Counted from the stretch's first letter, positions 44,728 through 64,000 are shown. The stretch: DNA of 64,000 bases from Schmidtea polychroa (GCA_044892525.1 CM097886.1:76570001-76634000); one strand, 5' to 3'. Program-made: numbers and translations. The notes: a model not told the origin generated them from the sequence alone.

Positions 44728-44818
44728 ATCTACAAAAATATACATATCATATTTCCTTTTGTCTTCTTTTTATTCTGAATTTTTCGGTTTTGTAATTTTT
44801 ATTTGGTTTTGGTTTTAT

Positions 44819-46493: not shown

Positions 46494-46575
46494 TGTCTAA
46501 ATAATTACACTATTACTACCACTATTATTTCATACATTTATTATCTACACTTTATACACGGAATTTTAATTTTTG

Positions 46576-47754
46576 TTATTGATCGGCGTAGCGGAATCCT
46601 TTGATTCGCTGCGCAATCCTCTGTCTGCACATCGGACATTCCTTTACTTTTCTACTACATGTGGCACATGCGATCAAATGTCCGCATGGCATATGAATAA
46701 CTTCTACACTCCTCTCCCAACACATAGTACATTTGATATCTCGTAAGATAGCTGTTTTGACCATTGATTCTTCTTTTATTTTTGTTTCAGGTTTTTCTCT
46801 ATACTGGGTTATCGCTCTGATCATATCGTACGTTGTTGTTGGTATATGTACATTTTTCTGTAGTTTCTCTCTAATCATGTTCTTTGCCCTTGTCGTGCCT
46901 ATTCCGGCTGCTTTCAACGCTCTGCACATGTTGGGTTTGTCTACCACTTCGTCAACCTCTTCCTCTGTTACTAGTACTTCCGGATATTCGGTTTCTTGTT
47001 CGTTGTGATATAGGCACCATGCTTGATGTCTAATTTCTGGTATGCCTTCTTCCGGTAATCTCTGTTGGCTTTCGCATCTTTCACACTTTAGTATTTGATT
47101 TTCTGTTAGGTAGAACCCTCTTATTGCTAATTCAGGTCCTCTCGTATCATCTCCGAACGTTTTCATTCTATTATCTGCTATTTGCGTGAGGAATTCCCCT
47201 TCACAAGTTGGAACATACTCATCAACGATTCTGGTTATCGCGATGCTCATTTTCCCTCCTTTTTCGTCTTCAGTTTTCAATTTCTCCAAGGCTTCGTATT
47301 TGATTTCCGGTTTGTTGTGTACATCAAATCCCAGTACGAATAGACAAGTTGGGAATCGTCTACGATGTTCCTCCTTTGGGTGTTCTCCTTTTTTCCATTC
47401 TGCTAATTTCCCTTTACAGAAACGACATGTTACTTGATCGGGTATCTCTGGTTTTCCGGAGAAGAAAAATCCGTCGCGTGCTAGCGCTCGGCTCTGTTCC
47501 TTGGTGAAAATGGTCTGATGTTCAAATGACAGATATCTCTGGTTCTCACATCTGAATTGTTCATTATCTCCCAGTTTCAAATTTTCGTGTACCCAATTAT
47601 AATCGTTTCCCATTCTCCGATAATATGCGTAACTACTTGGTTTTGTTTTGCTGACTTCCGCATCCTTCACTCTTTCTCTAGGTGACATATTGTCCTCTTC
47701 CTCTCTCATTGTGATCGTTTTCTTTCGGATATTCGGTCTCTCTTGATTAATCAT
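46576..47754 (-). CDS. Inhibitor of apoptosis protein (BIR + degenerate BIR + UBA-like + RING), intronless
   Basis: LARDGFFF...VTCRFC...W..GEHP.EEHRRRFPTCLFV; C-terminal RING CTMC...PCGHLIACATC....CPMCR. Confidence 0.92.
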   Translation of the reverse strand: MINQERPNIRKKTITMREEEDNMSPRERVKDAEVSKTKPSSYAYYRRMGNDYNWVHENLKLGDNEQFRCENQRYLSFEHQTIFTKEQSRALARDGFFFSGKPEIPDQVTCRFCKGKLAEWKKGEHPKEEHRRRFPTCLFVLGFDVHNKPEIKYEALEKLKTEDEKGGKMSIAITRIVDEYVPTCEGEFLTQIADNRMKTFGDDTRGPELAIRGFYLTENQILKCERCESQQRLPEEGIPEIRHQAWCLYHNEQETEYPEVLVTEEEVDEVVDKPNMCRALKAAGIGTTRAKNMIREKLQKNVHIPTTTYDMIRAITQYREKPETKIKEESMVKTAILRDIKCTMCWERSVEVIHMPCGHLIACATCSRKVKECPMCRQRIAQRIKGFRYADQ

Positions 47755-47894
47755 CTATAATAAATTTCATCATTTCTTTTTACATTTTCTTTTTCTAATT
47801 TTTATGGTTTTGGCAAGTTACTTTACTGTATACAATAACTTTATATTTACTTTACGTCGTTTTTACAAAATATTTACAGTTCCCTCCTATCCGT

Positions 47895-49319
47895 CTATCG
47901 TATTTCTATTGTTGGTCCTTCCTCATCTAGTTCGATTAGGAAGAATATAGTGTCCTTTTCTATGTAGGACCCTTCATTAAATTGGTATAGCTGCATAAAC
48001 TCTGCTACTCCTACCGCAGGATTAACCTCTGTAATCGGTTTATTCCCTGCTGGACTGGATGCTCGAAAACACATTATATGTGTCTTTTTTGCTCCTAAGA
48101 GAGATATTTTTAATCTATGTCGGAATGGCCATGCTATTAGGTCGTCAAAATCTCCTTTACAAATTTGCATATATATGGACATGCACCGATCTTTAAACTT
48201 TCCTTCACCATTTGGAAACCATCTCAATTTCATCTTGTATCCATGTTTCTTGGCGTAGAATGGTTTGCTCACTATCGTTGTCTGGATTCCTTGCTTTGCT
48301 TGCTCCATTATTTCCGTTATTCCTTGGATTTTCCACATGTATGGTAGTATTGGTAGTTCCTCTGTTGTCAGTTCCTTTGTAGTCCATTTGGTTTGTAATT
48401 TAGTTACTTCGACTAATTTGTCGTCTAATTTCAACATCCTTTGTGTTACGGCTTCTCTCGTATTTTCGAAGCTTTCCTGTGAGCTCAGCATTTCTTTTAT
48501 CATGATTTTATGTGATTTGAGTTCGTCTTTGACGTCTTCAATTGCTCTTGCTGTTAACTCTATTGCTCTCATCATCTTTTGCATGTGCTCGAATGTATTC
48601 TCCTCCACATGCTTCTTCATTTCTTCTGCTGGTAATTGTGCTCTACAGTCGAATGTCACCATTGGGCATTTTATTGCTTTTCTCGTGCATATCTCCCAAT
48701 GTTCATTTAATCTGACGTTGTTAATTTCTCCACACTCGTTTGGGCATTTCCCTGTATATTCGTCGCAAATCCGTCTTTCTACTGCGTTTCGATGTTCCAT
48801 TTCGATTTCTCTCCAATTAGCAGTTTCTCCGCAAAATTCGCATTTTTCCGTTCGCGCTTTGCATTCCCCTTTATGTTTGGTTTTCTCTTTTCGTAAAAAC
48901 TTTACCGTGCATGCTTCGCATTCCGATTCTAGATATTCGCATACGTCTGTATGGGCTCTTAACTCCTTTACTCGGCCTGTCCATTCGCATGACCTTTGGG
49001 TGCATCTTATTTTCACTTCTCTGATTTCTCGGTTCATTGCTCTATCCGGTATCGTACCAGTGGGGACCAACTTAAATGCTTCTCCACATCCTGGACAAGT
49101 TTCTCGTTTTAGTCTGGCTAATCTTATATCACACCCTCGGCACAATCTACACCCGCATCGAGTTTGACTTGCTCCAATTAATAATCTTCTACATGCTGTA
49201 TCGGCACATAATAATCTCTCTTCGAACTCGTCCGGCTCGGCTTGGTATTTTCTCATCAACTCATAGTTAATCTTTTGTTCCTCTGCTTCTCTCCGGTTTT
49301 CCTCTGCTTTGTTTTGCAT
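47895..49319 (-). CDS. TRAF-like protein (RING, TRAF zinc fingers, coiled coil, MATH), intronless
   Basis: CGCRLCRGC..TCPGC, DRAMNREI, CEWTG...H..VC, MATH YMWKI..SKPFY..GYKMKLRWFPNG..SIY..ICKGDFDDLIAWPF. Confidence 0.93.
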   Translation of the reverse strand: MQNKAEENRREAEEQKINYELMRKYQAEPDEFEERLLCADTACRRLLIGASQTRCGCRLCRGCDIRLARLKRETCPGCGEAFKLVPTGTIPDRAMNREIREVKIRCTQRSCEWTGRVKELRAHTDVCEYLESECEACTVKFLRKEKTKHKGECKARTEKCEFCGETANWREIEMEHRNAVERRICDEYTGKCPNECGEINNVRLNEHWEICTRKAIKCPMVTFDCRAQLPAEEMKKHVEENTFEHMQKMMRAIELTARAIEDVKDELKSHKIMIKEMLSSQESFENTREAVTQRMLKLDDKLVEVTKLQTKWTTKELTTEELPILPYMWKIQGITEIMEQAKQGIQTTIVSKPFYAKKHGYKMKLRWFPNGEGKFKDRCMSIYMQICKGDFDDLIAWPFRHRLKISLLGAKKTHIMCFRASSPAGNKPITEVNPAVGVAEFMQLYQFNEGSYIEKDTIFFLIELDEEGPTIEIR

Positions 49320-49408
49320 TCTACAATGATGATTTTTAATCTTGGGATTTCTACTTGATTATAACTCTATTTATTTACAGGATTATTTACATTTCACTCC
49401 TTTTTCTC

Positions 49409-49864: not shown

Positions 49865-50012
49865 TCCTATTTATAATACATGGTCATCATACTTGTTTTT
49901 GATTTTTCTACATATTGTTTTAATTTACTACTTTTATTTTGTACATACTACTACTATTATCACTACTTTTATTATTTCATTTATACATTATTTACAACAA
50001 CTCCTCCTCTCG

Positions 50013-51407
50013 TTATACCAGTGTCGCCATGGGGCCGGAATGCAGCGTGCGCATTCCCCCATATCTTTCGTCCGTTATTCGGTATATATCGACTTCGTGT
50101 GTCCATTCGTTCGGTGTGGGTATTCTTGGTAGTTCCGACATCCACAATCCGCTGGATCCGGGATCCTCTACCACCTCGTATTCTTCTAGATTCAGATTCT
50201 CTGTTGGAATACCGTATTCAAATTTTTCCACTTTGGGCCATTTTCTTTGGTTTCTCGGTTTTTGTTTACATCTTTTGGTGGTTCTTATCCACTGAATCAT
50301 TGCTAACGCTATTATCGTGCTTACTATCGCGCTAGTTATCCATATCATCTTTGTGATGATCGTTGTTCCATTATTTGTTTTTTCTGTCGTTAATATTGTA
50401 CTACCTGTGGTATTTGTTTCTGGTGCTTTGATTTTCTTGAATGCTTGATGTAATCGTTCCTTCTCTTTTTCTGTTAGGTGACTGTGATTTTCCCGTTTCT
50501 CTCCCCCTTCTTGATCTCGGGGTATCCACGGTATGTTTATTAATTGGGGTTTTTGTCGAGTTATTGGTTGACATACGCTGGTTCCTCTTCCTTTCTTAAG
50601 GATACATACTTGGTATCGTTCTTTCCGTTTCCCTGTCTCCATTTTAACGTCTGTACCTTTGTCTATCGGTGTTGTTGTACAGTCGATTATTCCCGTCTTA
50701 TCCATTACACATATCCTTATGATTGGTTCTCCTTCCTGGTTTTTGACTGTAATTACCTCTTCACCTTTCTTGTTGAGGTTAATAGTTATCTGCACTTCCC
50801 GTCTTTCGTCTTTAATTACTTCGTTAATCCATGTTGTTGTTGTTATTAATTCGGTTTGATTTTGCTCTGTTGTTGTTTTTGTACTAACTGATTTGTTTGG
50901 CTTCTTGGTTGTTATCCCCCTCAATGGATCTTGTTTCATTGCCATACTCTTTGGCTTGTCTTTTCTTGGTGCAGTTCTTGTTCCTTTACATACTACTATC
51001 CCTTGTGTTCCTGCGCATACCACAGTAGGGGTATTTGGTTTGACCTCTCCCCAGAAGAATTTGTGGTCTTGTGTCATATCAGTTATTATGCATATGTCTC
51101 TGTCTTCTCTGATGCATACATGTGTAATTGATCGACTCCCTTTATCTTCTATTTCGATACCTTCTTCCAAAATGTTGAGTTGAAAATGTACTCCGGTTTC
51201 GTTGGCTCTTTCTAGCTCCATTTCCTCTGTTGATATGTCTCTACAGATGTCATAATCTCCACATAGCCTGGGATCTCTTTTTTGGCTGCTAAAAATCTTT
51301 CCTTTTGTTATCGATCTGAAATCACAACTTACTCCTGTTCCTTCCATTAGTTGCACACATATTCCGACGGCATTTCCGTCGTAATCCTGACTTTTATCAT
51401 AAATACT
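50013..51407 (-). CDS. Type I membrane glycoprotein-like ORF overlapping the polyprotein end (-1 frame)
   Basis: Frame open from 51407; Cys-paired ectodomain, Thr-rich stalk, TM MIWITSAIVSTIIALAMIQWI, tail with Tyr motifs; no own signal peptide or upstream ATG. Confidence 0.75.
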   Translation of the reverse strand, partial: SIYDKSQDYDGNAVGICVQLMEGTGVSCDFRSITKGKIFSSQKRDPRLCGDYDICRDISTEEMELERANETGVHFQLNILEEGIEIEDKGSRSITHVCIREDRDICIITDMTQDHKFFWGEVKPNTPTVVCAGTQGIVVCKGTRTAPRKDKPKSMAMKQDPLRGITTKKPNKSVSTKTTTEQNQTELITTTTWINEVIKDERREVQITINLNKKGEEVITVKNQEGEPIIRICVMDKTGIIDCTTTPIDKGTDVKMETGKRKERYQVCILKKGRGTSVCQPITRQKPQLINIPWIPRDQEGGEKRENHSHLTEKEKERLHQAFKKIKAPETNTTGSTILTTEKTNNGTTIITKMIWITSAIVSTIIALAMIQWIRTTKRCKQKPRNQRKWPKVEKFEYGIPTENLNLEEYEVVEDPGSSGLWMSELPRIPTPNEWTHEVDIYRITDERYGGMRTLHSGPMATLV

Positions 51408-54400
51408 TCACCTTCTTGGGAAGCTTCTCTTACGATTCCCATATTTTTTGTTTCTGTTAAACAGATGGATGTTAATATTATAAATATTCTTTGTAGTAGG
51501 ATTGGCTGGATTTGATTTCGACACACTATGCTATGTAGTGGGGACTTTCGTTTTTTGTTCTCCGTTTTGTCGAATCCTTGATCTTCACCTCGACATTGGT
51601 CTTCTTCGTCTTCTTCCAATTCCTCATCATCACTCGTTGTTTCTCCGCCTTCCGGATTCTGTTCTCTGTCGTTTTCCTCTGGGTTGTTATCGTTATCCCC
51701 CATCCTTTCGTCGTCGTCGTCGTCGTCATTCCTCTCACCCGGGGTTTTCCTGAAAATGTCGTCCTCGACATTTGCTGCTTTGATCATCTCCTCGTATTTT
51801 TTAATTATCTCTTTTTTGTCGTTGTGGATACTTTCTCGTTCTTCTTTGGTTCCTTGATATTTCCGTTGTTTCCGGTGCCATTCCCACACTAGTATTTCTA
51901 GTTGCTTTTTCATCGCATGTGTTTTTGTGCATTCCCACCAATTACCTGTCAATTCTGTTCTATTTCTCTGTAATATTGCTTTAATGGTTTTTGGCATTGG
52001 TGGTCTTGAGTATATGGCGCTTCTTAGTACGATATTTTCGTTGTTTTGGAATTGATTTATATCAATTACTTCCGCTCTTAATTCGTTTTGTTTCCATTTG
52101 ATTAATATTGCTGCGGTTCTGTCTAAGTTTCCTCTGATGGCTTCCAGAATTGGTTCAATGCTCTGTCCCAACACCTCGGCTTCTTCGGTTGTTGCATTTC
52201 CTGTGATAAAGTTCACTATACTAGGTCTTTTTGACCTGACGGCATAACGTAATACGGTTCGTTGTTTGTTATCTTTTTCTTTCAGCGTGGATCCCGTTCT
52301 TAATAATTCTCTGAGTACATCTCTTGACGCGCCTATTGCTATGGCTTTCATCAGTGGAGTTTTTCCTTTACTGTTTTTGACGTTTGTTGATTGTTTGCAG
52401 TTTTCCATTATTCGTATAATCTCTAAAGCTCGTTTTTCTTGTCCTGCTTTCACTGCATGATGGATTGGCCAGTTATTACTCAAATCACTTGTTAGGAACA
52501 TGATTGGTAATCTCCGGATTAGTTCATATATTTGAGTCGGTATTTGTAATCCTTCGGCATATCTTCGTCCTTTCGCATATCTTTCTGCTACTAACATTAG
52601 TTTGCCCAATACTTGGTATTTATTGGTTATATCGGCCCATTCTGGTACAATTTCTCGTGCTATTTTTATTGTCATATTCCATGTTGCTTGGCTCCTTGCC
52701 ATTGCGTCAGCTTCGCTTTCTGCTTCAGTTCCTTTATGGGCGCTGCTGCTTGTTTCTCCTCTCAACATGAATATTCGTCTTGTCTGTGATCTAGTTAATC
52801 TACCGCTTACTTCTGGTTCCGTTGTGGCATTTGTTTGTGATCTCGTGATTATCCTTCTTGTTTCTGGGTCTTTAGTGGCAGTTTTCGCTACTGCTTTGCA
52901 TCGACATGTATTCACATAAATGGGTCTAATTAGTGGATTGTTAACCAACTTCACTCTAGCGTTGTTCTCGTTTACATAGATGATTTCATATGGCCCTCTG
53001 CCATTACGTTGTAATTTCTTTGCTGTTCCTGGGATTAATTCGGGTGTTTCTATAATAACCCAATCTCCGATTTTAAATTGATGGTTTTGCACGTTCTTCT
53101 TTTTATCATGTAATTCCTTATAACTCTCTTGGTTGAATCGGATGTTCATCCCTGCGGTTTTCCATATTTCTTGCATTCTCTCCTTGAACTTTGTCACATA
53201 ATCATCTATCTCCATATATTGTGAGATTGGCGGTTGGTATTCGAGATCCATCGGCATGTTGCATTCCCTTCCATACATGAGTTTAAACGGACTCATTTTC
53301 GTTGCTGAGTGTATTGACATTCGATAAGCCATTAGACACAACTTAATATATTCATCCCAGTCCTTTTGATGTTTACTCACGTAATTGGACATCATGTCTA
53401 TTAGTATGCCGTTAAATCTTTCTGTCTGACCATTCGTTTGCGGGTGGTATGGTGAGGTTCTCAATTTGGCAATTCTAAAATAATTTGTCACTTCATTTAT
53501 TATCTCGCTCATGAAATTAGTTCCTTGGTCAGTTAAGATTTGTTTTGGTGTTCCATATCTGCAGCAGATCTCTTCCACTAATATCCTTGCAACCGTTCGT
53601 GCTTTCTGGTCTGGCATCGCAAATGCTTCAGGGAACTTAGTCAGATAATCAGTTATTACCAATATATACACATTTCCACTGTTAGTCTCTGGTAGTGGTC
53701 CAACTACATCCATTGCAATCATTGTCATCGGTTCTGGCGGTATCGGCATTGGTTTCAATGGTGGCTTTAGTTTACTGCCCGTTGTTTTTCTGGTTGCGCA
53801 TATCAGGCAGTTCTTTATCCATTCTTTCACGTCATCGCTCATATTTGGCCAGTAATATTTCTGTTTGAGCCTTGCTTCTGTTTTCTTGGCTGACATATGT
53901 CCGCCCAATTTACCATCGTGGTATTGAATCATAATTTCTTTCCGTCTACTTTCTGGTAGACACATCAATCGTTTGTCGCCATCCATTACCAATAGCCATC
54001 CTTTCTCGATCGTATATCTGTGACGATTTTTCTCCATGTGTTCTTTTAGTCGATCATCGTTGTTGAATATTTTCATATCGTTTTTTTCCAGGAACTCAAT
54101 TATTAGTTTTAATTCATTGTCTTCCTTTTGTTCGTTCTTTAGATTGGTAAAATCGATATCTTCCGCGATTATCAGGCATATTCGTCTGACGTCATGATCC
54201 ATGAGTTCTTCAAATACAAATCTCGACATGCAGTCTGCATTTGCGTTTGCTTTTCCTGACTTGAATTTGATGTATGGGGAATATTCTTGTAACTGCATTG
54301 CCCATCTCATCAATCGACTAGATGCCTCTTTATGTTGGCCCAACCAAACTAGAGGTTGATGGTCCGTAGTAATAATTATCTCGTGTCCCCATAATAAATA

Positions 54401-57400
54401 TTTGAAATGTTTTATCGCCTGAATTATTGCTAAGGCTTCTCTTTCTGTGACCGAGTAATTCTTCTCGTGTTTTTTGAACGTCTTGCTATAATATCCGATG
54501 ACTCTTTCTCTTTTCTCCTCATCCCATTGTCCTAGCACAGCTCCTGATGCGTATCCACTTGCATCAGTTGCTAATAAAAAAGGCTTTTTGAAATCTGGGT
54601 GGATTAAGATAGGCGAGGCTATTAGTTTATCTCTGAGCGATTCGAAAGCTATTTGCTGTTCCCTTTCCCACAGAAATGGAGTATCTTTTTTTGTTAGTTC
54701 TTGAATTGGTTTTGCGATAGTTGCATAATTTTTGATAAACTTGCGGTAGTATCCGCATAATCCCAGAAATTCTTGTACCTGAGTCACGGTTTTTGGTATC
54801 GGACAATTCTTTATTTTCTCAACGTTTCTCGGATCTGGTTCTTTTCCTTTTGCCGACACAATGTGTCCTAAAAATGTGACTCTCTCCTTTGCCCAGTCGC
54901 ATTTTGACGGTTTCAATTTCAGCTTCCATTGTTTCAGTCTTATGAATACGTTTCTGATGTCGATTAAGTGTTGCTCGAAAGTACCTGAATAAATTAACAG
55001 ATCATCGATATACACCATACATTGTTTGATCCCGTGTGTCACAAAGTTCATACATCTCTGAAACGAAGCAGGTGCGTTTGTTAATCCAAATGGCATCTTT
55101 TTAAACTGATATAAATCTTTTCCGATGGTAAAGGCTGTCTTTTCTCTATCTTCCTCTTTAACTTTAATTTGCCAGTATCCACTCTTTAGATCTAAAGATG
55201 TAAAGTATGCTGCTCCATGTAACATCTGTAACATTTCGTTAATATCTGGCAGTGGGTATGTATCCCTTTTTGTTACTGCATTCAACCTCCGATAATCGAT
55301 ACAAAATCTCTGTGTGCCATCTTTCTTTTTGACCATTACTACTGGAAATTGCCAGGGTGAACAGCTAGGTTCGATCACTCCGGCATCTAACATCTTTTGT
55401 ACCTCCTCCTCTGCTACCGTTTTCTGTGCTTCGGCTAATCGATATGGTCTCAAAGTTATGGGTGTCTCATCCGTTAATGGTATAATGTGTTGCGTTACAT
55501 CGCTGGTACCCAAATCCAAATCTGAAGCCGCAAAAATATCTTTAAACTCAATCAGTAGCTGTCTGAGTTGTTCCTTTTCGTCTTCATTTAGGAGTTCGCT
55601 ATCGATGGTCCATAATTCTTTTTCGTCTGCTCCCTCGCTTTTGATCTCCGGCAGCTCAATGTTCATCATTGGTGTGAGTTTTCCAAGTCTCTCGTTTTCG
55701 TAGATTACTTTATCTTCCTCATCAAAATTGGTGATGTTGATGGGTATCTCGTTATCCTCATTTATACTGACAATTTCTCTTGCCAATGGCAGCTCCCTTC
55801 TCTTCTCGAATTTTTGACTTGGTTCAAATATCATATCTCCTTTGGCTTCGTTATCGACCTTGACATAACATATTGTCTGGGTACGTGCTGGTATTATCAT
55901 TTTTTCGGAGCATCTCACTTCTGTTCTCATTGTGCATATCTGTCCAGTTTTATCTTTTAATTTCATGGAACTTAAATCAATCACAATTTCTTTCAATAAT
56001 TCCGGCATTACATCTGTTCCAATTATACATGATACGCTTAGCTGTCTAATGACTGCGAGGTACGTTGTAACTTTAACCCCTTTGTATTCGATCGTTGACC
56101 ATACTCTTCCTACTACCGCTATGGATTGTTTGCTGCATGTTATTACATCCATGGTTGTCTCCTCAATGCATGGCCATAGTCTTCCTGGTAGCATATTCAT
56201 ATTTATTGCTGAGATATTTGCTCCGGTATCAATCATTGCATCCATCTCTATTCCGTTTACTTCGACCGTGATAGTTAACGATGGTCCTGCTGGTGTCTGC
56301 AATACCGCAATCGTTCGTGTCTCCACCTCTTGCCCCACATTTTTAACTGGCTTGATCATTGTTGGGTCCATTGCTGCCCAATTTGGTTCATACGCCGTTG
56401 GGTAAATATTTGGTACGGGTAATCTCCCGGTTCCCATTCTTATCCGTTCTCTCATTGTCCCTGGTCGTCGCATTGGCCCATTGGTTGGTGCCTGTAAATA
56501 TGGTGATCCCCATGGTTTCCTTTTTTCGTTTTCCCAAGTGTCTGTATTTTTGTTTATCAACATTACTCCTCCTTGATTATTATCGTCATCGTCGAAATCA
56601 TCATTGTCATCACTATCATCGTCTCGTCTGAGATTCATCCACTTTTTCCACTTCCCGGTTCTTTTCGCTTTCTCTTGAGTTCTTTCCGCTTCCAATCTCA
56701 TTATCACTTTGAACTTACGTCCGACTTCTTCATCTGTCCCTTTCATTTGCGTTAATATTTTCAACAATCTTTTTATTCGATGAATATCCTTTGAGTGTCC
56801 ATGCAACACCATTGTTTTCGCTAGGAACGGTAAGAATCCAATTGCAAGTTTCCAATTTACTTTTCTCTCGCGCTTATAGATGTCAAAACATGCTAGCATC
56901 TGAGTTAGTATCACTCTAACTATTTGTATTATCAGAATTATTCCGAGTATCCCTGCCATCATTTGGCCAAATACCAAAAATCTACCCCACATAGCCTTCA
57001 TCATGTTTGCTGTTGCTTGTTGGTAGTGACTTGGTGATAATAATAGCTCGTAGTTCGGGCTCTCCCCATAATTATTTCCTCCAGAAATAGTCACTATATT
57101 TGATAAGATTGCTTGTCTTTGCGCTGGGAATAACAGGTGGGCTCTTGCTGATTCGAGATCTTTTGGTGTATATAATCCACTCTGGGATACGTCTATCGGC
57201 TTGAACTCTAGTTCTGTTGTTAGTTCCGTCAATCCAAATTTCTTGGGCGTTACTACGATTGTTTTACTTGGGAATTGAACCCATTGTCCATCTTCTTTTT
57301 CATACATTGGTCCATATGCATTACTACAATTAAACAGATTTGGTTGAAACCCTACCGGGTTCATTACCCTAGTGACTGCTTGCACAAACCTGGGTTTACC

Positions 57401-60400
57401 TTCGTGGATAATTTCGAGTTCGTTTGCACACTTATCTCTTGGTATTGTAGGGTTTTCTGGCAATCTTGCCATTATCTTTTTGCATTGGTAGGTGTACATC
57501 ACTTCGCCCACGATTCGTCCGAAATATCCTTCCTGTAATGGTAGTAACGGAATTGCGTTATCTGGATTTGTAATCGCCATTGCTAATTTGGTTCTCAGTA
57601 TTTCTTTGTTGAGCAGGCAATCGTTTCTTAACAGATCATGGTAGACTTTTTCCGTGGATGTTAATCCTCTGTGATATAAGAAATCCATCTTATTATTAGC
57701 GTATAAATATAGTTTGACATCCTTTTCGCTTAGTCTTCCGACTGCATTTGCTAGGGTTCTCCGCGACAAGTAGATCCCTTTATAATTGGTGCTGATCACC
57801 ATCTCATCGCATTTACTCACCATTTTGTTCTTTATGAACCTCATTCCTATTCCATCGTCTTTGGAGATTATCGCTGTGGGTGTTACTTCCGATTCCAATT
57901 TCGATGTTATTACGTCTTCTCTGAATCCTTTCCTTGCTCTCAACTCTTCCATCGCTCGTTTTTCTGCTTCTCCTTTTGGTTCACTGTATACTTTCCCTTG
58001 GATTTCTTCGAATATTGCTGTTTTGAGCAACATTAGTCGACATACCTTCTGATCCGCATGGTATACCAGAGTTGACATTCCGGTTGAACATGATCGATCT
58101 GATGCGAGACAACTTGGGTATTTCTTCATTGCTTGCGTGTCAGGGTCGAAATAACCTTGATACCTTTCTAATTTAGCTTCGTAGCTTTCTATCACGACCA
58201 CTCCACTAACCAGTTGTCCGTTCAAGGTGTACGTTCCTGTCTCACATGTTCCGTCTCCTTTAGTGATTCTGCCTGCCGTATACACACGAGTCGTTTTTAT
58301 TTTTCCTGGTTCTGCAGCAATTTCAATCCCTTGCCTTAAGTGGATTCTCCCCGATCGGAATCCTTCCTCGCATTCCTCTCTTGATAGTAATATTACTGTC
58401 GATTCCAATCCCGGTTCTATGATTGTTGAGTGAGAGGATGAACCGCAGTGATGTGCAAATATCTTTCTGGTTACCGTACATTCTTGGACCATAGTTTTGA
58501 TGAAATCTGCTTCTTGATATACGTTGTACGAGACTGATGCCATGACTGTTTGTAATTTTCTTGGGTTTGCCGCTTTACAGTCTTCCGTATCCTTTAATGA
58601 ATATTTCTCATGGATTTTTATGTTGTCGCAGTCGTATACTGCAAATGACTCCGTTCCTTTGATACACATCATCCATATCAATATCGTGGTTATTATGGCA
58701 TTCATTCCCTTTCGACTTGCTCTTGGGTCGTTTATATTGATTGTTCCTTCGAATTCAGTTAGCAAATCGCGTAACTTTGCTTGCATCATTTCCGTTTGAT
58801 CTTTCTTCCCAGTTGATTCGATGAAGCTTCTCCATCCCCCTTGTTCAAGTATATATGGTTCTATTGATCGTTTAATTATTTCTGTTACTGTGAATTCGTA
58901 ACCCGTTGCGTTATATTTTGGCATTCGTTTTTTATATTGGCCGATAACGTTATATACTAAATATGCTAATCCCACTAAAAATCGATTTTGGTCCTCTGAT
59001 CTGCTTAATAGATGTTCCACAATTAATCTGAGTTCCACGGGATCTTTTAACGTTAATCGAATTTTATTATCCATGATTTTCATTATTATCGGTTTCAATA
59101 CTGCCCATAATTGTTTGGCTTCGGTCGGAATATTATCCTTCCTCATGACTCTTTTCACTTCTGGATTTGCTAATGCTAACATGTTGGCTAATAGGTCATT
59201 TATCCATCGTGTCCCTTGTTCTCGGACGCTTGTCTTCACTTTCACTTGTTTTACTAATGCACTTAGTTTATCCATTTTAGTTTTTACCTGCTCCATTTGC
59301 GCCTGAACTTTGGATTTTGGTTCGATCTCTGCTTTATCTGTTTTTGGTCTTCCTCTTGTTCGTCGATCCATAGCTGTTCCGGTTTCTTTCCGTTTTGGCG
59401 GATTGTAAGTTGTATCTTTTGACGTGGTCGCTCCTGGATCTACTCTCCAGTTGCTCCATTCATCGGTTGTGGTTACATCTTTATTGGCATCTCTTTCCAC
59501 GTTATCTAAATCCGTCTCGGCTTCCGTCGTTTCCACTGGTTGTCTCTGCGCGCATACAAATCCATCTAAATCATCAGTTGTCAGTTCACCTTCGTCGATA
59601 AATAGATCTCCTGATTGCGATGCTCTCATAATCTCGCCTGCTTCTACTATCTCTTGTAATTCATCCAGTATTTCGTCTTCTCCCGTTGTTTCGATCGTCA
59701 CTTCACTAACCGCATTTGGAACTTCTGGTGTGTCCAAACTTCCTGGTTGTTGGGTGGATGATTTTTGCTTTATCTCTCTTCTCCTTAGCTCTCTACCTGC
59801 AATTTTACTCACCGTTAATCTGTTCACAATTTCTCCTTGGAGTGGTGTCACACCGATCTCAATATCGTCGTCTAATGATCGTCCCTCGTGTTGTAAGTGG
59901 AATGGGAGTTCATAAGGTATTCTCTTTTTAACTTCTCTGACTTTAGCTGTCGTATAGAATTCCTTTTCCATTGGTTCAAAATCTGGCATGAATATTTTTA
60001 ATTGATATTTCTCAGGTGAGTTTTCGGCCCACTCTTGTTGTTTCCATTTCCGGATGATTTCACCAAATTGTTCAGGGTACCATACGTATACCCGTCGATA
60101 TTCTTCAATCGCTTTAACGATCTTTCGTAGATTTTGAATCCTTTTGCATGATTCGGCTATCCATTTTGCTAGTTCTACCACCGCTCGTCGACGATTTTTC
60201 GCCCCGTTTTGTAATATCTCCATCAACTCCTTACATTTTTGTGCTTCCAACAATGTTGCTGCTTCTTCCTCATCTGCGTCGGCGTCTATTGGTAGATGTC
60301 CTGAATCAGACACTCTTCTCCTCATCATACAGATTCTCGGTTGATTTTCTGGTATGTTCAGTCGTTGGTTCATTTCTTGTTCTGTTTCAACTTCTACTCT

Positions 60401-63400
60401 GATCTGGATAGCATTGTTTTTCACAAATTTTGACTGCTCATTCTCAATGTAACTTAGACGTATTAATTTAGGTGTCCCAGAAGCGATATTTTCTGATGTT
60501 GTTGGTCGTTGATAGCAGGCGCTCCTTGGATCTGGTTTCAATGTTTCTTTATGCATGTTAAGGCTATCTTTCAATGGTTCGATTGCTATCGTCACTTTTC
60601 TGCTAAACGGCCATGGTACCTTGTCGTCATAATTTCCTTTGCAGATGACGAAGAATGCCGACACATAATTTCCTTTACCTATCCCGTCTCCGTTCGGGTA
60701 TATTCGCAATTTCATCTTGTACTCACCTAATCCTGAGTAGAACGGTGGACTTACTAATCGTGTGATTTTCTCTTCCTTTGCTGATTTTATCTTTTCCATC
60801 CAATTCTCAATTTTCCACGTGAATGGTGCTAACCTTACTGGTTCTCGTATCTCCTCATCTTCTCCTGATGGTAATTCATTTTGGAATTCTTGTGGTAATA
60901 TATCCTGGTAAGTATCGATCGGTTTCTCTCTTACCCATACTGCTGCGATCTCTTCGGGTATATTATCTATCCAATTTGGTTCCAACTTTTGCTGCTCCCA
61001 ATCCCATCGAGCTTCACTTTCGATCCACACTTTTTTCCATGGTATCAGTTTGCAATCTTCGTCATTGAAGGCTGCTAGTTTTAGTTTATCATCCTTTAGC
61101 CAATGGTTATAAATATCTATTATTCGATCCATCTTTGCCCTCATTCCCCATTGGAATCTTTTAATTTGTTGCTCGGTTTTCGTGGCGTTTTTGTGCCCAC
61201 CAGATGGTTCATCCATCGCGATTATATTGATGACGGCTCCATCTTCCCAGATTCCTAGTTCGTAAATTACAGTTCGGTCTCCTCTTTCTAGCATGTGCCG
61301 GTTGTACATTATTATCACATCTTCGATCATTCCATCCTCACTATTTTCTCGAGCTTTTTGGATGATCTCTTGATCTATGATTTGCACTAACTCGTCAACT
61401 TGGCAATCGGGATTAACTTCTATTATTTGTTTCTCTTCATTTGGCAACTTCACCTTTATTTTTATCGTTTCATGCTCGCATTTGGTTCTCTCGTATTCTC
61501 CGTATTTAGATATCAATTCTGTCGCTCGTTTGTCTTCGAATCTCATAATTTCCGTGTCTCGTACGTCTTTAACAAATTGTTTCATTAGTTGTGGCCATCT
61601 TTCTCTCAATCTATTAATGTATTTCCTTGTCTGATCGATAGCTTGTTTGACTAAAATTATTTGGTTTTCTTTCATTATTTTTCGTTCGATCTTTTCCAAT
61701 TCTGGTTCTACTTCATTGTTAAACACTTGTTGGATTTTCTTGAACATCTCTGCTACCGAGTCGTCATCCCTGGTTTTCTCTAAGGTTAAGATGTTAGTTT
61801 CGTTTGGCCATATCATCGCATCTACCAAATGTATGCCTATTTTAACTTTGTAACCATCGACATATAATTGTTTATTTTTATGGCTCGTTCCCATTTTTTC
61901 CTGTACCCAGTTGTACAGTTCATCGGTATTTGTTCCTTTTAATTCGATAGTCTGTATCTGAATCTCGGGGTGTTGAATGCTTACTTGATATTGATCTGGG
62001 CCTGCTTCCTTTAGTTTCTCTTTATATTTTGTTGCTAAATCTTTCCATGCTGCCGTTATTATACCTCCTTCACACTGGTATACTTGAGTTATAAATTTTA
62101 AGCATTTTCTGTATGTTAACTCGTTGATGTAGCTCTCATTTCGCTCTATTTCTGTTACTGTGTCGAGAATTTCCTCGAATATCTCTTCTTCATCTTTTTC
62201 TATCATTGATTTCATGTCATCATTTTCACTCTCCTCACTACTTTGAGGTGTTTCACTGTTTGGAGGTGTTTTTGGTTCGTTATTTTCCTCACTTGACTGA
62301 AATAATTCGCCTCCCAGGCTACTCACCTCACTTTTCTCATCTTCCTGATCCGTCTGATCGCTCCGCATTTGTCTCAGCATGTTTATTTTAGCTTTGGTAT
62401 GTGGTTCCTTCTTTTCAAACCACTCATTTTTCCTGAACCAATGCTCTTTCACTTTTTCTTTTATTTGTTCCTCAGTTAATGTAGGATTTTCGTTTTTGAT
62501 TCTGTCCTCGATTTTTTGTAGTAGTACCCTCTGAATTCGATTTTTTGTAACTATCTCATTGCTTTTTGGTTCGTCTTTACTCTCATCTCTCTTTTGTCTC
62601 CTTTCTTTCTCCTCTTTGGTAAATTCTTTAATCAATTGTATTTTCTCTTCACTGCTCAATTCTGTTCGTGGATCGATCTCATTTTCTTTTGTCGTTTTTA
62701 TCTCCTTGTTTATTATCGGTTCACTCCCGTCGTTGTTAACACACTGCTCCGCAGTGTGCGATTCCTCTTTATTTGTTAATCTCATCATATTTATTCTTCC
62801 GGGATTCGCTTCCCGTTGTTTCCATCTTTCTTGAATTTCTCTGGCTTCCTCGTTTTGTAATCTTTGCCATTCGACTCGTTGCTGATCTTGTTGTTGCTTA
62901 CTTGGTTGGTTCCGGATTTCCTCGGTGCTCTGCATCATGTTGATTCGTTGTTGTTGGTTATTAGTCGGTATTCGCAGGATCATATCTTTTAATTGTTCGA
63001 TTTCCTGCATGAGGTTGATTTGTGTGTTCTGAACTGGATTGTTTGATCCTGGTTGATTTGGTTTGGTTCTCATCGTGCATTCTCTTGCCATGTGTCCAGG
63101 CTGATTACAATTGTAGCAGGTTCTGGTTCCTCCTCTGCTCATAGACATCATGGGTCCTCTGCAGACATTTTCCGTGTGGCCTCTTCTCCCACACTTTTGA
63201 CACATCCTTGCTTTATAACATTCATTGCTCCAATGCCCTGGTCGTTGGCATATGTTGCACGTTCGATTGTTGATGTCGTTGTTCCTGAAATTATTAGTAA
63301 AATTTTGAATATTACCTCCATTGTTTTGGTTTCTTGTTTGTGGAGTTTTGAACAACTGTTGCGATCCTGGGATGAATTGATTCATTACTGGATTTGCATT

Positions 63401-64000
63401 ATTGACTTGGTTGTTTGTGGTTGTTGCTGTTGCCGCTGGAGCTGCTGGAGCTGCTGTCATTGCTGCTACTTGTATTGGTGTTAAGTAGGTTTCACATTTG
63501 TTAGCGATTTTTAGTGCTTCTTCCAGCGTCTCTGGTGCTCGGCATCCCAAAGTTGCTCGTATATCCTCCCGTTTCATGCCATCTACGAATACGGCTATTA
63601 TTTTGTCTTCCGGAACTGGTTGATTTGAATCGAAGGCTTCTCGTGCTAGTCGTCTCAATTCGCATGCGTACAGTGCGTTGGATTCGTTATATTTCTGCTT
63701 TCGATGCAGAAAGTCTAACATTTTTCGATTTCCCTCTTTTTCGGTACCGAATGTTTTTATTAAAAATTCCTTGATCTCTTTCCACGTTCTCAACTTAGTT
63801 GCATCACATTTCGCCTCCAAGTATACATCTTGGGCGCTTCCCTTTAGATATAGGGGTATTCGTTCTCGTACGACTATGTCTGGCCAGTGACATATCGTAA
63901 TGTATACTTCGAATTCCTTTATAAACGTTTCCAGCTGGTTTATATTTCCATCGAATGGCTCTCCTCGAAATTTCTCTCTGAATTCTCCAATGTTGACGTG
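51347..64000 (-). CDS. Giant Gag-Env-Pol polyprotein (>4217 aa, 5' end beyond the window)
   Basis: The 4157-aa ORF stays open for 60 more codons to the window end (HVNIGEFREKFRGEPFDGNINQLETFIKEFE...IPLYLKGSAQDVY, capsid-like). Confidence 0.97.
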   Translation of the reverse strand, partial: HVNIGEFREKFRGEPFDGNINQLETFIKEFEVYITICHWPDIVVRERIPLYLKGSAQDVYLEAKCDATKLRTWKEIKEFLIKTFGTEKEGNRKMLDFLHRKQKYNESNALYACELRRLAREAFDSNQPVPEDKIIAVFVDGMKREDIRATLGCRAPETLEEALKIANKCETYLTPIQVAAMTAAPAAPAATATTTNNQVNNANPVMNQFIPGSQQLFKTPQTRNQNNGGNIQNFTNNFRNNDINNRTCNICQRPGHWSNECYKARMCQKCGRRGHTENVCRGPMMSMSRGGTRTCYNCNQPGHMARECTMRTKPNQPGSNNPVQNTQINLMQEIEQLKDMILRIPTNNQQQRINMMQSTEEIRNQPSKQQQDQQRVEWQRLQNEEAREIQERWKQREANPGRINMMRLTNKEESHTAEQCVNNDGSEPIINKEIKTTKENEIDPRTELSSEEKIQLIKEFTKEEKERRQKRDESKDEPKSNEIVTKNRIQRVLLQKIEDRIKNENPTLTEEQIKEKVKEHWFRKNEWFEKKEPHTKAKINMLRQMRSDQTDQEDEKSEVSSLGGELFQSSEENNEPKTPPNSETPQSSEESENDDMKSMIEKDEEEIFEEILDTVTEIERNESYINELTYRKCLKFITQVYQCEGGIITAAWKDLATKYKEKLKEAGPDQYQVSIQHPEIQIQTIELKGTNTDELYNWVQEKMGTSHKNKQLYVDGYKVKIGIHLVDAMIWPNETNILTLEKTRDDDSVAEMFKKIQQVFNNEVEPELEKIERKIMKENQIILVKQAIDQTRKYINRLRERWPQLMKQFVKDVRDTEIMRFEDKRATELISKYGEYERTKCEHETIKIKVKLPNEEKQIIEVNPDCQVDELVQIIDQEIIQKARENSEDGMIEDVIIMYNRHMLERGDRTVIYELGIWEDGAVINIIAMDEPSGGHKNATKTEQQIKRFQWGMRAKMDRIIDIYNHWLKDDKLKLAAFNDEDCKLIPWKKVWIESEARWDWEQQKLEPNWIDNIPEEIAAVWVREKPIDTYQDILPQEFQNELPSGEDEEIREPVRLAPFTWKIENWMEKIKSAKEEKITRLVSPPFYSGLGEYKMKLRIYPNGDGIGKGNYVSAFFVICKGNYDDKVPWPFSRKVTIAIEPLKDSLNMHKETLKPDPRSACYQRPTTSENIASGTPKLIRLSYIENEQSKFVKNNAIQIRVEVETEQEMNQRLNIPENQPRICMMRRRVSDSGHLPIDADADEEEAATLLEAQKCKELMEILQNGAKNRRRAVVELAKWIAESCKRIQNLRKIVKAIEEYRRVYVWYPEQFGEIIRKWKQQEWAENSPEKYQLKIFMPDFEPMEKEFYTTAKVREVKKRIPYELPFHLQHEGRSLDDDIEIGVTPLQGEIVNRLTVSKIAGRELRRREIKQKSSTQQPGSLDTPEVPNAVSEVTIETTGEDEILDELQEIVEAGEIMRASQSGDLFIDEGELTTDDLDGFVCAQRQPVETTEAETDLDNVERDANKDVTTTDEWSNWRVDPGATTSKDTTYNPPKRKETGTAMDRRTRGRPKTDKAEIEPKSKVQAQMEQVKTKMDKLSALVKQVKVKTSVREQGTRWINDLLANMLALANPEVKRVMRKDNIPTEAKQLWAVLKPIIMKIMDNKIRLTLKDPVELRLIVEHLLSRSEDQNRFLVGLAYLVYNVIGQYKKRMPKYNATGYEFTVTEIIKRSIEPYILEQGGWRSFIESTGKKDQTEMMQAKLRDLLTEFEGTININDPRASRKGMNAIITTILIWMMCIKGTESFAVYDCDNIKIHEKYSLKDTEDCKAANPRKLQTVMASVSYNVYQEADFIKTMVQECTVTRKIFAHHCGSSSHSTIIEPGLESTVILLSREECEEGFRSGRIHLRQGIEIAAEPGKIKTTRVYTAGRITKGDGTCETGTYTLNGQLVSGVVVIESYEAKLERYQGYFDPDTQAMKKYPSCLASDRSCSTGMSTLVYHADQKVCRLMLLKTAIFEEIQGKVYSEPKGEAEKRAMEELRARKGFREDVITSKLESEVTPTAIISKDDGIGMRFIKNKMVSKCDEMVISTNYKGIYLSRRTLANAVGRLSEKDVKLYLYANNKMDFLYHRGLTSTEKVYHDLLRNDCLLNKEILRTKLAMAITNPDNAIPLLPLQEGYFGRIVGEVMYTYQCKKIMARLPENPTIPRDKCANELEIIHEGKPRFVQAVTRVMNPVGFQPNLFNCSNAYGPMYEKEDGQWVQFPSKTIVVTPKKFGLTELTTELEFKPIDVSQSGLYTPKDLESARAHLLFPAQRQAILSNIVTISGGNNYGESPNYELLLSPSHYQQATANMMKAMWGRFLVFGQMMAGILGIILIIQIVRVILTQMLACFDIYKRERKVNWKLAIGFLPFLAKTMVLHGHSKDIHRIKRLLKILTQMKGTDEEVGRKFKVIMRLEAERTQEKAKRTGKWKKWMNLRRDDDSDDNDDFDDDDNNQGGVMLINKNTDTWENEKRKPWGSPYLQAPTNGPMRRPGTMRERIRMGTGRLPVPNIYPTAYEPNWAAMDPTMIKPVKNVGQEVETRTIAVLQTPAGPSLTITVEVNGIEMDAMIDTGANISAINMNMLPGRLWPCIEETTMDVITCSKQSIAVVGRVWSTIEYKGVKVTTYLAVIRQLSVSCIIGTDVMPELLKEIVIDLSSMKLKDKTGQICTMRTEVRCSEKMIIPARTQTICYVKVDNEAKGDMIFEPSQKFEKRRELPLAREIVSINEDNEIPINITNFDEEDKVIYENERLGKLTPMMNIELPEIKSEGADEKELWTIDSELLNEDEKEQLRQLLIEFKDIFAASDLDLGTSDVTQHIIPLTDETPITLRPYRLAEAQKTVAEEEVQKMLDAGVIEPSCSPWQFPVVMVKKKDGTQRFCIDYRRLNAVTKRDTYPLPDINEMLQMLHGAAYFTSLDLKSGYWQIKVKEEDREKTAFTIGKDLYQFKKMPFGLTNAPASFQRCMNFVTHGIKQCMVYIDDLLIYSGTFEQHLIDIRNVFIRLKQWKLKLKPSKCDWAKERVTFLGHIVSAKGKEPDPRNVEKIKNCPIPKTVTQVQEFLGLCGYYRKFIKNYATIAKPIQELTKKDTPFLWEREQQIAFESLRDKLIASPILIHPDFKKPFLLATDASGYASGAVLGQWDEEKRERVIGYYSKTFKKHEKNYSVTEREALAIIQAIKHFKYLLWGHEIIITTDHQPLVWLGQHKEASSRLMRWAMQLQEYSPYIKFKSGKANANADCMSRFVFEELMDHDVRRICLIIAEDIDFTNLKNEQKEDNELKLIIEFLEKNDMKIFNNDDRLKEHMEKNRHRYTIEKGWLLVMDGDKRLMCLPESRRKEIMIQYHDGKLGGHMSAKKTEARLKQKYYWPNMSDDVKEWIKNCLICATRKTTGSKLKPPLKPMPIPPEPMTMIAMDVVGPLPETNSGNVYILVITDYLTKFPEAFAMPDQKARTVARILVEEICCRYGTPKQILTDQGTNFMSEIINEVTNYFRIAKLRTSPYHPQTNGQTERFNGILIDMMSNYVSKHQKDWDEYIKLCLMAYRMSIHSATKMSPFKLMYGRECNMPMDLEYQPPISQYMEIDDYVTKFKERMQEIWKTAGMNIRFNQESYKELHDKKKNVQNHQFKIGDWVIIETPELIPGTAKKLQRNGRGPYEIIYVNENNARVKLVNNPLIRPIYVNTCRCKAVAKTATKDPETRRIITRSQTNATTEPEVSGRLTRSQTRRIFMLRGETSSSAHKGTEAESEADAMARSQATWNMTIKIAREIVPEWADITNKYQVLGKLMLVAERYAKGRRYAEGLQIPTQIYELIRRLPIMFLTSDLSNNWPIHHAVKAGQEKRALEIIRIMENCKQSTNVKNSKGKTPLMKAIAIGASRDVLRELLRTGSTLKEKDNKQRTVLRYAVRSKRPSIVNFITGNATTEEAEVLGQSIEPILEAIRGNLDRTAAILIKWKQNELRAEVIDINQFQNNENIVLRSAIYSRPPMPKTIKAILQRNRTELTGNWWECTKTHAMKKQLEILVWEWHRKQRKYQGTKEERESIHNDKKEIIKKYEEMIKAANVEDDIFRKTPGERNDDDDDDERMGDNDNNPEENDREQNPEGGETTSDDEELEEDEEDQCRGEDQGFDKTENKKRKSPLHSIVCRNQIQPILLQRIFIILTSICLTETKNMGIVREASQEGEVFMIKVRITTEMPSEYVCN
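52090..52480 (-). other. Ankyrin repeats (polyprotein domain after integrase)
   Basis: WPIHHAVKAG, NSKGKTPLMKAI, KDNKQRTVLRYAV, EPILEAI. Confidence 0.85.
52900..53930 (-). other. pol: Integrase domain
   Basis: HHCC (H.GKLGGH...CLIC), IAMDVVGPLP, LTDQGTNF, YHPQTNGQTERFN. Confidence 0.97.
54220..55480 (-). other. pol: Reverse transcriptase and RNase H domains
   Basis: RFCIDYRRLN, LDLKSGYWQ, MPFGLTNAPASFQR, YIDD (55001-55012); RNase H TDASG, EREALAI, TDHQPL, NANADCMSR. Confidence 0.98.
55950..56300 (-). other. pol: Aspartic protease domain
   Basis: AMIDTGANIS (Asp at 56228-56230), CIIGTDVM. Confidence 0.95.
56780..58705 (-). other. env: Envelope glycoprotein, chuvirus/Monjiviricetes class III fusion-like, in frame between Gag and PR
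   Basis: Signal MNAIITTILIWMMCIKGTES, then FAVYDC..YSL.D..C, HCGSSSH, C.LNKEIL..KLAMA..NPD, GEVMYTYQC, TRVM..C..GPMY..W, SGLY..DL..LLFP; TM at ~56890-56990. Confidence 0.85.
58814..59225 (-). other. Bcl-2-like domain in the polyprotein
   Basis: BH2-like IEPYILEQGGWRSFIES (58814-58864), BH1-like HLLSRSEDQNRFLVGLAYL, upstream amphipathic helices. Confidence 0.65.
59795..60007 (-). other. Ubiquitin-like domain 3
   Basis: YQLKIF...KVREVKKRI..FHLQHEGRSLDDD. Confidence 0.5.
60385..60826 (-). other. TRAF-type MATH domain in the polyprotein
   Basis: FTWKIENW, SPPFYS..GEYKMKLRIYPNGDG..GNYVSAFFVICKGNYDDKVPWPF. Confidence 0.93.
61220..61468 (-). other. Ubiquitin-like domain 2
   Basis: IKIKVKLPNEEKQIIEVNPDCQVDELVQ...IMYNRHMLE..RTVIYELGIWEDGAVINII. 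Confidence 0.65.
61781..61990 (-). other. Ubiquitin-like domain 1
   Basis: QEKMGTSHKNKQLYVDGYKVKIGIHLVDAMIWPNETNILTL parallels ubiquitin [39 protein letters not shown]. Confidence 0.55.
63075..64000 (-). other. gag: Gag capsid and three CX2CX4HX4C zinc knuckles
   Basis: LHRKQKYNES...Y...LRRLA capsid motif; CNICQRPGHWSNEC, CQKCGRRGHTENVC, CYNCNQPGHMAREC. Confidence 0.95.

Follow-up and report, generated by a model that had tools for sequence, protein, structure and literature searches.

An envelope glycoprotein in frame between Gag and Pol in a giant Burro-kind retroelement of Schmidtea polychroa, and a predicted internal signal for its proposed membrane threading

What becomes of a retroelement polyprotein when an envelope glycoprotein (Env) lies inside it, in frame between Gag and Pol? 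The question is raised by a locus of Schmidtea polychroa (GCA_044892525.1 CM097886.1:76570001-76634000), a stretch of 64,000 nucleotides (nt) that was analysed as a whole and is hereafter called the window. Most of a giant Burro-kind element is contained in it: coding sequence of one strand and one composition runs for about 21.1 kb, from position 42909 to the window edge; at least 21 kb of the element lie inside, and its 5′ end lies beyond the edge. A sequence-only reading of this DNA had claimed that Env is embedded in frame between Gag and Pol and that a signal peptide, a Cys-patterned ectodomain of about 550 amino acids (aa) and a transmembrane segment precede the protease (PR) in the same open reading frame (ORF). 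Both statements stand on closer analysis. The novelty attached to them does not, given that the layout was published in 2019 for the giant planarian Burro elements (Arkhipova & Yushenova, PMC6431247) and later for elements of nematodes, bryozoans and flatworms; it is an already-known oddity, confirmed here and not discovered. What the present analysis adds to the known layout is the position of the Env signal directly after a putative BCL2-like domain and a set of TRAF-like, IAP-like and other accessory genes farther downstream, together with a testable model of how the polyprotein would be processed.

The ORF1 frame and the Env module within it

The polyprotein frame, ORF1, is a single frame in which the terminal stop is the only one among the 4217 codons translated to the window edge, and in which Pfam finds Gag, Env and PR in that order. 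The longest ORF in the other frames over the same 12.5 kb reaches 163 aa, which argues that ORF1 is not a product of chance. The extreme N-terminus of Gag falls beyond the window edge, and ORF1 thus has at least 4217 aa; the residue numbers used here are those of its 4157-aa version (51347..63820, minus strand). At the Gag end, Retrotrans_gag was matched at 29.2 bits against a cutoff of 24.1 (E 1e-6) and Ty3_capsid at E 2e-6. The Pol domains follow in the order PR, reverse transcriptase (RT), RNase H (RH) and integrase (IN), with the DTGA, YIDD and HHCC motifs all intact. Pol shares 35-48% identity with numerous Pol proteins of the Ty3/gypsy type, some of them named Ty3 or 412, and the closest named match in the Pol search is from a pseudoscorpion (40%). 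By its Gag capsid, CCHC knuckles and order of Pol domains, the element is assigned to the Ty3/gypsy type (Metaviridae). BLAST detected no repeats within the polyprotein.

The Env unit has type I topology, in agreement with what the sequence-only reading had proposed to check by prediction, and consists of a signal sequence, an ectodomain of 561 aa with 14 Cys residues after the signal and one N-x-S/T sequon, and a single C-terminal transmembrane segment (Kyte-Doolittle 2.53), which is the sole strong transmembrane segment within the first 4100 residues of ORF1 and its highest peak of hydrophobicity overall. Its limits had been drawn at 56560 and 58705; the upper one coincides with the Env Met (aa 1706, nt 58705), shortly before the hydrophobic core of the signal (aa 1709-1719), and the lower one falls about 115 aa into the cytoplasmic tail. 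The length of this tail together with the linker to PR ranges from ~80 to ~470 aa across relatives. No furin-type site was found in the Env ectodomain.

The nature of the ectodomain emerges from both sequence and structure comparisons. Pfam assigns Env to Monjiviricetes_fusion (PF24664) with 229 bits against a cutoff of 27 (E 1e-67). An AlphaFold (AF2) monomer model, for which the input alignment comprised Env and 76 homologues, reached a mean predicted local distance difference test (pLDDT) score of 86.9. A Foldseek comparison of the model with solved structures placed herpesvirus gB at the top (E 1e-14, probability 1.0, ~630 aligned columns), and among predicted viral structures the glycoproteins of chuviruses and related mononegaviruses came first, the best being Tacheng Tick Virus 4 G (E 7.7e-38, TM-score 0.60). 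The sequence profile of the Env family matched only gB in the PDB, and weakly (E 0.005). Furthermore, the alignment of 77 Env sequences has five columns in which Cys never varies and another eight in which it is conserved to at least 90%. As modeled, the Env ectodomain belongs with the class III fusogens, in the chuvirus/mononegavirus G family, and the concern, voiced in the sequence-only reading itself, that such a fold might be lacking is not borne out.

The embedding of Env recurs well beyond this locus. A phmmer search with Env returned 991 homologues, of which the best ~20 are embedded in long proteins, the remainder being stand-alone glycoproteins of ~650 aa with ~25% identity. When the search was limited to polyprotein-sized proteins, three contained Env and Pol in one chain, and Pfam agreed, with Env before PR-RT-RH-IN. 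BLASTP collinearity combined with Pfam showed Env followed by PR within the same protein in 12 cluster representatives (P0001, P0002, P0003, P0004, P0005, P0007, P0008, P0010, P0012, P0014, P0016 and P0019), with Env identities of 23-45%. A CCHC knuckle lies upstream of Env in three relatives (P0008, P0019 and P0021). All these relatives are unannotated metagenome contigs from several samples. The presence of the same embedding in twelve relatives points to a conserved family trait and not to a local accident. Moreover, pairwise identities of Env and Pol are correlated (r=0.91 for seven elements, that is, 21 non-independent pairs), with Env diverging somewhat more than Pol in every pair. Taken with the shared Env-PR layout, this co-divergence indicates that the fusion is old, stable and selected.

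Predicted signal site, pre-Env domain and possible routes of expression

How the embedded Env might be expressed can be approached through its upstream boundary, which we aligned for 16 sequences, the window copy and 15 relatives. All 16 have a hydrophobic core of 12-16 residues at the start of Env, mostly with basic residues before it, and this core and the Env transmembrane segment were seen in every relative examined. The residue three before the conserved mature start (A/V-Y/F-D-C) is Ala in nine sequences, Thr in three, Ser in two, and Gly and Met in one each; position -1 is A, S, T or G in 15 of the 16 and position -3 is small in all of them, which is the pattern of a signal-peptidase site. 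A Met stands directly ahead of the core in only about six of the 16, so that the segment looks like an internal signal and not like the start of a separate protein. On the other side of Env, the stretch from the Env tail to PR is free of stop codons in all relatives. A 2A-type skipping motif (NPGP) is absent from the window and 14 relatives, and the motif TGTAAATAA, which recurs in the spacers between the downstream genes (see below), has no match within ORF1, so that nothing there points to an internal poly(A) site of this type. The sequence-only reading had proposed that the polyprotein threads the endoplasmic reticulum (ER) in the manner of a flavivirus polyprotein; the conserved cleavage-type site, the rarity of the Met and the missing stop before PR lend this proposal indirect support. 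The same reading went further and suggested that Gag, Env and Pol are made 1:1:1 and that the particles are infectious, both of which are conjectural.

We therefore lean, on the strength of these sequence patterns, towards a model in which the element is a Burro-kind Ty3/gypsy retroelement with an ORF1 that is translated whole and threaded through the ER by its internal signal and stop-transfer transmembrane segment. Under this model, the genomic RNA would be translated as a single polyprotein; as the internal signal emerges, the ribosome would be directed to the ER and the ectodomain would be translocated, with signal peptidase cutting three residues ahead of the conserved mature N-terminus. 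The transmembrane segment would then halt the transfer, and Pol, synthesised on the cytosolic side, would remain joined to the Env tail until freed by the protease of the element. The upstream product, from Gag to the BCL2-like domain, would keep the hydrophobic core of the signal as its C-terminal membrane anchor, which is the usual topology of Bcl-2 proteins. As for the origin of Env, its source was probably an RNA virus of the chuvirus/mononegavirus kind; the capture would be ancient, and Env has co-diverged with Pol since.

The polyproteins of flaviviruses and pestiviruses offer an analogy of mechanism. They are alike in having a single ORF with internal signals, signal-peptidase-type sites and alternating stop-transfer segments, and also in that the upstream, capsid-side product retains the signal as an anchor while the virus's own protease acts on the cytosolic parts, both of which are predicted here. 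Nevertheless, there is no sequence kinship, and the element in the window is reverse-transcribing and has an aspartic protease, with cleavages that are only predicted.

The domain directly upstream of the signal gives this topology an additional aspect. The ~100 aa that precede the Env signal are conserved in several relatives, and a profile of five such pre-Env segments searched against the PDB hit Bcl-xL and Bcl-2 only, in all 60 matches listed (E 5e-4 to 6e-3). These matches cover the BH1-BH2 part and end just short of the natural tail anchor. The pre-Env sequence of the window alone yields weak matches to the Bcl-2 family, and in two relatives, P0009 (E 1e-3) and P0004 (E 0.2), Pfam reports Bcl-2 immediately before Env, each time under the curated cutoff. 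In the alignment, the hydrophobic segment begins ~46 aa past invariant GGW columns. If the BCL2-like assignment holds, the core of the Env signal would sit about where a Bcl-2 tail anchor is expected; after a signal-peptidase cut, the upstream product would then face the cytosol, held in the membrane by its tail.

Several observations weigh against parts of this interpretation. Pfam Bcl-2 gave no match on the window's own pre-Env copy, and a single-sequence AlphaFold model of the domain (pLDDT 43, no fold match below E 0.7) was discarded. A dUTPase, which is part of the published Burro repertoire, was not matched by the Pfam hmmscan even in the gap between PR and RT; the same scan matched no SUMO-like domain. 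The long terminal repeats (LTRs), the primer-binding site and the 5′ end all fall outside the window, which bears on the age and completeness of the copy. Equimolar output of Gag and Pol, as expected from a polyprotein translated whole, would be awkward for capsid assembly. Finally, an in-frame Met stands at the start of the window's Env, as would be expected if the protein were translated separately, and splicing around env may occur at this locus.

This last point leads to the principal alternative, namely, that Env is made from a cis- or trans-spliced subgenomic mRNA, or that env is removed as an in-frame intron, or both, the single ORF being a packaging convenience. The Met right before the core in the window copy and in about five of the 15 relatives is what such a route would use; retroviruses make Env from spliced RNA, and Cer1 of Caenorhabditis elegans, also a single-ORF element, makes an extra protein by splicing (PMC10309623). 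Moreover, the downstream ORFs, which have an AG close to the ATG and, past the stop, a motif resembling a poly(A) signal, suggest that RNA processing is in use. On the other hand, 10 of the 16 sequences have no Met before the signal, and in every relative an env mRNA would read on into PR-RT-IN for want of a stop past the Env tail. Furthermore, the frame is kept at both junctions in lineages that diverge down to ~25% Env identity, a constraint that an intron would not need. On balance we consider the splicing route unlikely.

Threading could also operate as proposed but serve an intracellular Env, which would bring Gag and Pol to ER membranes for assembly, much like particles known to bud into the ER, making the element a membrane-assembling retrotransposon and not an infectious agent. 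The same topology would indeed tether both flanking products to the membrane, the thousands of genomic copies of Burro-type elements (PMC6431247) would fit amplification in the germline or in stem cells, and the ectodomain has its solitary N-glycosylation sequon. Yet a fusogen of 560 aa is needless for mere membrane anchoring, and the whole class III fold, including the invariant and nearly invariant Cys columns, has been kept over deep divergence; we regard an exclusively intracellular role as improbable. Still less credible, to the point of being very improbable, is that the layout has no functional meaning, with the copy being fossil and inert or the long ORF being an artefact of assembly. 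This view could draw on the single visible copy, the lack of an LTR pair within the window, an ORF2 that is out of the ORF1 frame whereas the corresponding module of relatives is in frame, and two relatives that are broken up, on long-read-style contigs, into several abutting ORFs. Against this stand 4217 stop-free codons in an AT-rich genome, the full set of intact catalytic motifs, and the recurrence of the architecture in at least 12 metagenomic contigs, which derive from several samples and were assembled independently of one another.

Returning to the threading model, it can be extended to a joint reading of the whole element in three parts, which we put forward as possible but doubtful. 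In its first part, one hydrophobic segment would do double duty, as the tail anchor of a captured Bcl-2-like regulator and as the signal peptide of a captured class III fusogen, so that a single signal-peptidase cut would yield an anchored cytosolic Gag-MATH-BCL2 product and a lumenal Env. In the second, the polyprotein would be a four-pass threaded precursor (signal, transmembrane segment, signal, transmembrane segment) with a second membrane protein at its end. In the third, TRAF-like, IAP-like and other genes would be expressed from an accessory cassette of operon-like units, every one of which would carry a poly(A)-type signal. Neither the topology nor the RNA-processing logic of this reading was found in the literature searched.

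Burro and other elements with an upstream Env

Burro/GYPSM1 elements are giant gypsy-like LTR retrotransposons of the planarian Schmidtea mediterranea (Grohme et al. 2018; PMC6431247), with an ORF1 of 4873 aa in that species and of 5140 aa in D. tigrina. As described in the same review (PMC6431247), this ORF1 encodes Gag (retrotrans_gag and three CCHC knuckles) with MATH_TRAF_C, SUMO-like and BCL2-like motifs, an Env homologous to mononegavirus fusion glycoproteins between BCL2 and PR, and then a dUTPase-like domain in the PR-RT gap, RT-RH-IN, BIR and ankyrin, the dUTPase-like and SUMO-like domains having been detected by HHpred; the accessory ORFs may alternatively be subdomains of the polyprotein. 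The genome of S. mediterranea is >70% A/T with abundant Burro copies, and BURRO1 is reported to be abundant, transcribed, active and controlled by Piwi-interacting RNAs. The element in the window shares with Burro the single giant ORF1, Gag with three CCHC knuckles, MATH, the putative BCL2-like domain, the in-frame Env, PR-RT-RH-IN, ankyrin repeats, BIR, accessory ORFs and an AT-rich host, a likeness judged by domain repertoire against the published description of Burro. It differs in that its ORF1 measures at least 4217 aa, BIR resides in a separate downstream ORF5, and Pfam yields neither the dUTPase-like nor the SUMO-like domain. Membrane topology and signal-peptidase processing are not addressed in the Burro description (PMC6431247).

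Beyond planarians, the order gag-env-pro-pol has been ascribed to nematode endogenous retroviruses (Sacco et al. 2022, J Gen Virol, as cited in PMC13524379), and GAG-ENV-POL 'errantiviruses' with a gB-type Env have been described in Bryozoa and Platyhelminthes (Chary & Hayashi, PMC13524379), a paper in which polyprotein translation or splicing is not discussed. The nematode, bryozoan and flatworm elements resemble that of the window in their Ty3/gypsy backbone and in a class III (gB/chuvirus-like) Env upstream of Pol, Env being compared here by description, and some of their ectodomains are likewise flanked by two hydrophobic segments; unlike it, they were collected at ~3-10 kb and have no giant polyprotein or accessory cassette. 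The nematode elements are reportedly one continuous ORF. The term 'gag-env-pro-pol' itself was not found in use in the literature searched.

The source family of Env has been tapped more than once. Dezordi et al. (2020; PMC7642597) describe mosquito BEL/Pao elements that carry a chuvirus-derived glycoprotein; this Env comes from the same family (Jingchuvirales-type class III G), and the retroelement superfamily is different. The sequence-only reading had named this kind of capture; its account of established env placements, 3′ of pol in a separate ORF, was incomplete, the gag-env-pol order being already in print (PMC6431247). Cer1 of C. elegans, a Ty3/gypsy element placed as sister to a flatworm Env-carrying element (PMC13524379), has gag and pol joined in a single, uninterrupted ORF, as does the element in the window, but differs from it in having no Env and in making its extra protein from a spliced mRNA with the first exons in the gag frame (PMC10309623).

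Accessory genes, flanking DNA and implications

The features of the element are collected in Table 1. Downstream of the Pol domains, ORF1 ends shortly after a second signal-like hydrophobic segment, and its end is overlapped by ORF2, in another frame. In P0001-P0003, a topologically similar module of signal, ectodomain and transmembrane segment lies in frame after Pol, with no sequence similarity between the lineages. A programmed -1 frameshift from ORF1 to ORF2 was considered and rejected: the frame relation fits, but the overlap has no canonical slippery heptamer. The single frame change at ORF2 may be a lesion or the normal state.

Table 1. Coordinates of the Burro-kind element and its predicted features in the window (residues of ORF1 in the 4157-aa numbering)
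Feature	Residues	Coordinates	Strand	Basis or remark
ORF1, giant polyprotein frame		51347..64000	-	4217 codons, open to window edge
Gag capsid domain, Retrotrans_gag / Ty3_capsid		63482..63958	-	Pfam
Gag nucleocapsid, three CCHC zinc knuckles	188, 207, 235	63077..63259	-	Pfam and motif
MATH/TRAF-C domain	1000-1144	60389..60823	-	Pfam
Putative BCL2-like domain, BH1-BH2 part, directly upstream of Env signal	~1600-1690 (approx.)	58751..59023	-	profile search
Env internal signal sequence, predicted signal-peptidase site	1706-1725	58646..58705	-	hydrophobicity and alignment
Env ectodomain, class III fusion glycoprotein (modeled)	1726-2286	56963..58645	-	Pfam, AlphaFold, Foldseek
Env transmembrane segment (stop-transfer)	2287-2305	56906..56962	-	Kyte-Doolittle
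Env cytoplasmic tail and linker to protease, 211 aa		56273..56905	-	no Pfam match
Aspartic protease, DTGA at aa 2531	2517-2608	55997..56272	-	Pfam and motif
Reverse transcriptase, YIDD at aa 2937	2830-2988	54857..55333	-	Pfam and motif
RNase H	3051-3180	54281..54670	-	Pfam
Integrase, HHCC zinc domain and catalytic core	3289-3460	53441..53956	-	Pfam and motif
Ankyrin repeats, 3′ of integrase	3786-3873	52202..52465	-	Pfam
Second signal-like hydrophobic segment near ORF1 C-terminus	4104-4122	51455..51511	-	hydrophobicity
ORF2, 447 aa, Cys/Thr-rich, transmembrane segment near C-terminus		50013..51356	-	overlaps ORF1 end in another frame
Spacer after ORF2		49865-50012	-	
ORF3, 151 aa		49409..49864	-	no family match
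Spacer after ORF3		49320-49408	-	
ORF4, TRAF-like, zf-TRAF and MATH		47895..49319	-	Pfam
Spacer after ORF4		47755-47894	-	
ORF5, IAP-like, BIR and C-terminal RING		46576..47754	-	Pfam
Spacer after ORF5		46494-46575	-	
ORF6, 532 aa, charged		44895..46493	-	coiled-coil-looking by eye; no family match
Spacer after ORF6		44746-44894	-	
ORF7, 261 aa, charged		43960..44745	-	coiled-coil-looking by eye; no family match
Spacer after ORF7		43884-43959	-	
ORF8, 324 aa, N-terminal signal-like segment, C-terminal transmembrane segment		42909..43883	-	

Six ORFs that start with ATG follow ORF2 on the same strand and with the same composition, down to position 42909, ORF8 being the last that has the composition of the element. 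The MATH domain of ORF4 is 34% identical to that of ORF1. No homologues of the accessory ORFs were found in the loci of the relatives, which suggests that this cargo is lineage-specific, and in the literature searched no paper on LTR elements with IAP or TRAF cargo was found except the Burro review (PMC6431247). Each of the spacers after ORF2 to ORF7 contains a TGTAAATAA-like motif ~15-30 nt past the stop, and in five of the six an AG lies within 4 bases of the next ATG. Exact matches to TGTAAATAA inside the element number six, all in spacers; the minus strand has one more in host DNA, at 31765. Judged from these motifs, the layout of the spacers looks like that of operon-like units with per-gene poly(A) signals and splice acceptors. 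The minus strand also has two A runs, one of ~45 within 44790-44869, just after the spacer motif, and one of ~24 at about 42150-42180; the former could be a templated poly(A) tail from a captured polyadenylated mRNA or a simple-sequence expansion.

Within the window, no long direct repeat or LTR pair was found, because the 5′ end of the element lies off the window, and the Rfam and tRNA scans were both empty. In the contigs of relatives, the only repeats are a 52-nt end repeat (L001) and a local 117-nt duplication (L005). The host flanks have a G+C content (GC) of 16-30%, in line with the A/T-rich genome of S. mediterranea, and are rich in hAT, piggyBac and MULE remnants, features that fit a planarian host but are not specific to one. 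DNA-transposon remnants lie at 5151-6517, 9099-9927, 22781-23233 and 31708-33495, some hAT-like and piggyBac-like by eye, and a MULE transposase ORF in the flank, with relatives that also carry FLYWCH, has 83% identity to a protein from a metagenome and 71% to one from a freshwater mussel. Between 38000 and 40000, an island of 39-45% GC stands amid DNA of 22-35% GC and contains overlapping minus-strand ORFs (38170-39215); it could be part of the 3′ region or LTR of the element, or another insertion. Runs of N occupy 19216-19374 and 34808-34937.

The relatives show further variation of their own. Several of P0008, P0004, P0007, P0001 and P0002 have two to four tandem aspartic-protease domains after Env, and P0001 and P0002 have an additional DDI-like protease domain 3′ of the integrase. 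L001 (14249-15688) and L002 (15113-16390) each have, farther downstream, an ORF that encodes an RNase_T (DEDD exonuclease) domain, reminiscent of the DEDDy exonuclease ORFs captured by LTR elements of bdelloid rotifers (PMC5408684). L003 (GCA_003506685.1, labelled Flavobacteriaceae bacterium) is a 9-kb contig with a eukaryotic Env-Pol retroelement polyprotein; it was binned into a bacterial metagenome-assembled genome, almost certainly as contamination. L006 and L007, long-read-style contigs from sample ERZ25039515, have the same gene order broken into several abutting ORFs, which may reflect decay of the copies or assembly indels.

The layout of this element shows that a retroelement can carry an envelope inside its Gag-Pol polyprotein. 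Such an arrangement, already in print for Burro, would force a membrane-threaded product and an assembly logic unlike that of retroviruses. The sequence evidence presented here, namely, a conserved cleavage-type site, the lack of a conserved start codon, the co-divergence of Env and Pol, and the position of the signal after a BCL2-like domain, makes the threading checkable, one prediction being that the mature N-terminus of Env lies three residues before the conserved Y-D-C. Were the joint reading to prove true, the element would represent an invertebrate 'complex retrovirus' equipped with modulators of host death and immune signalling.

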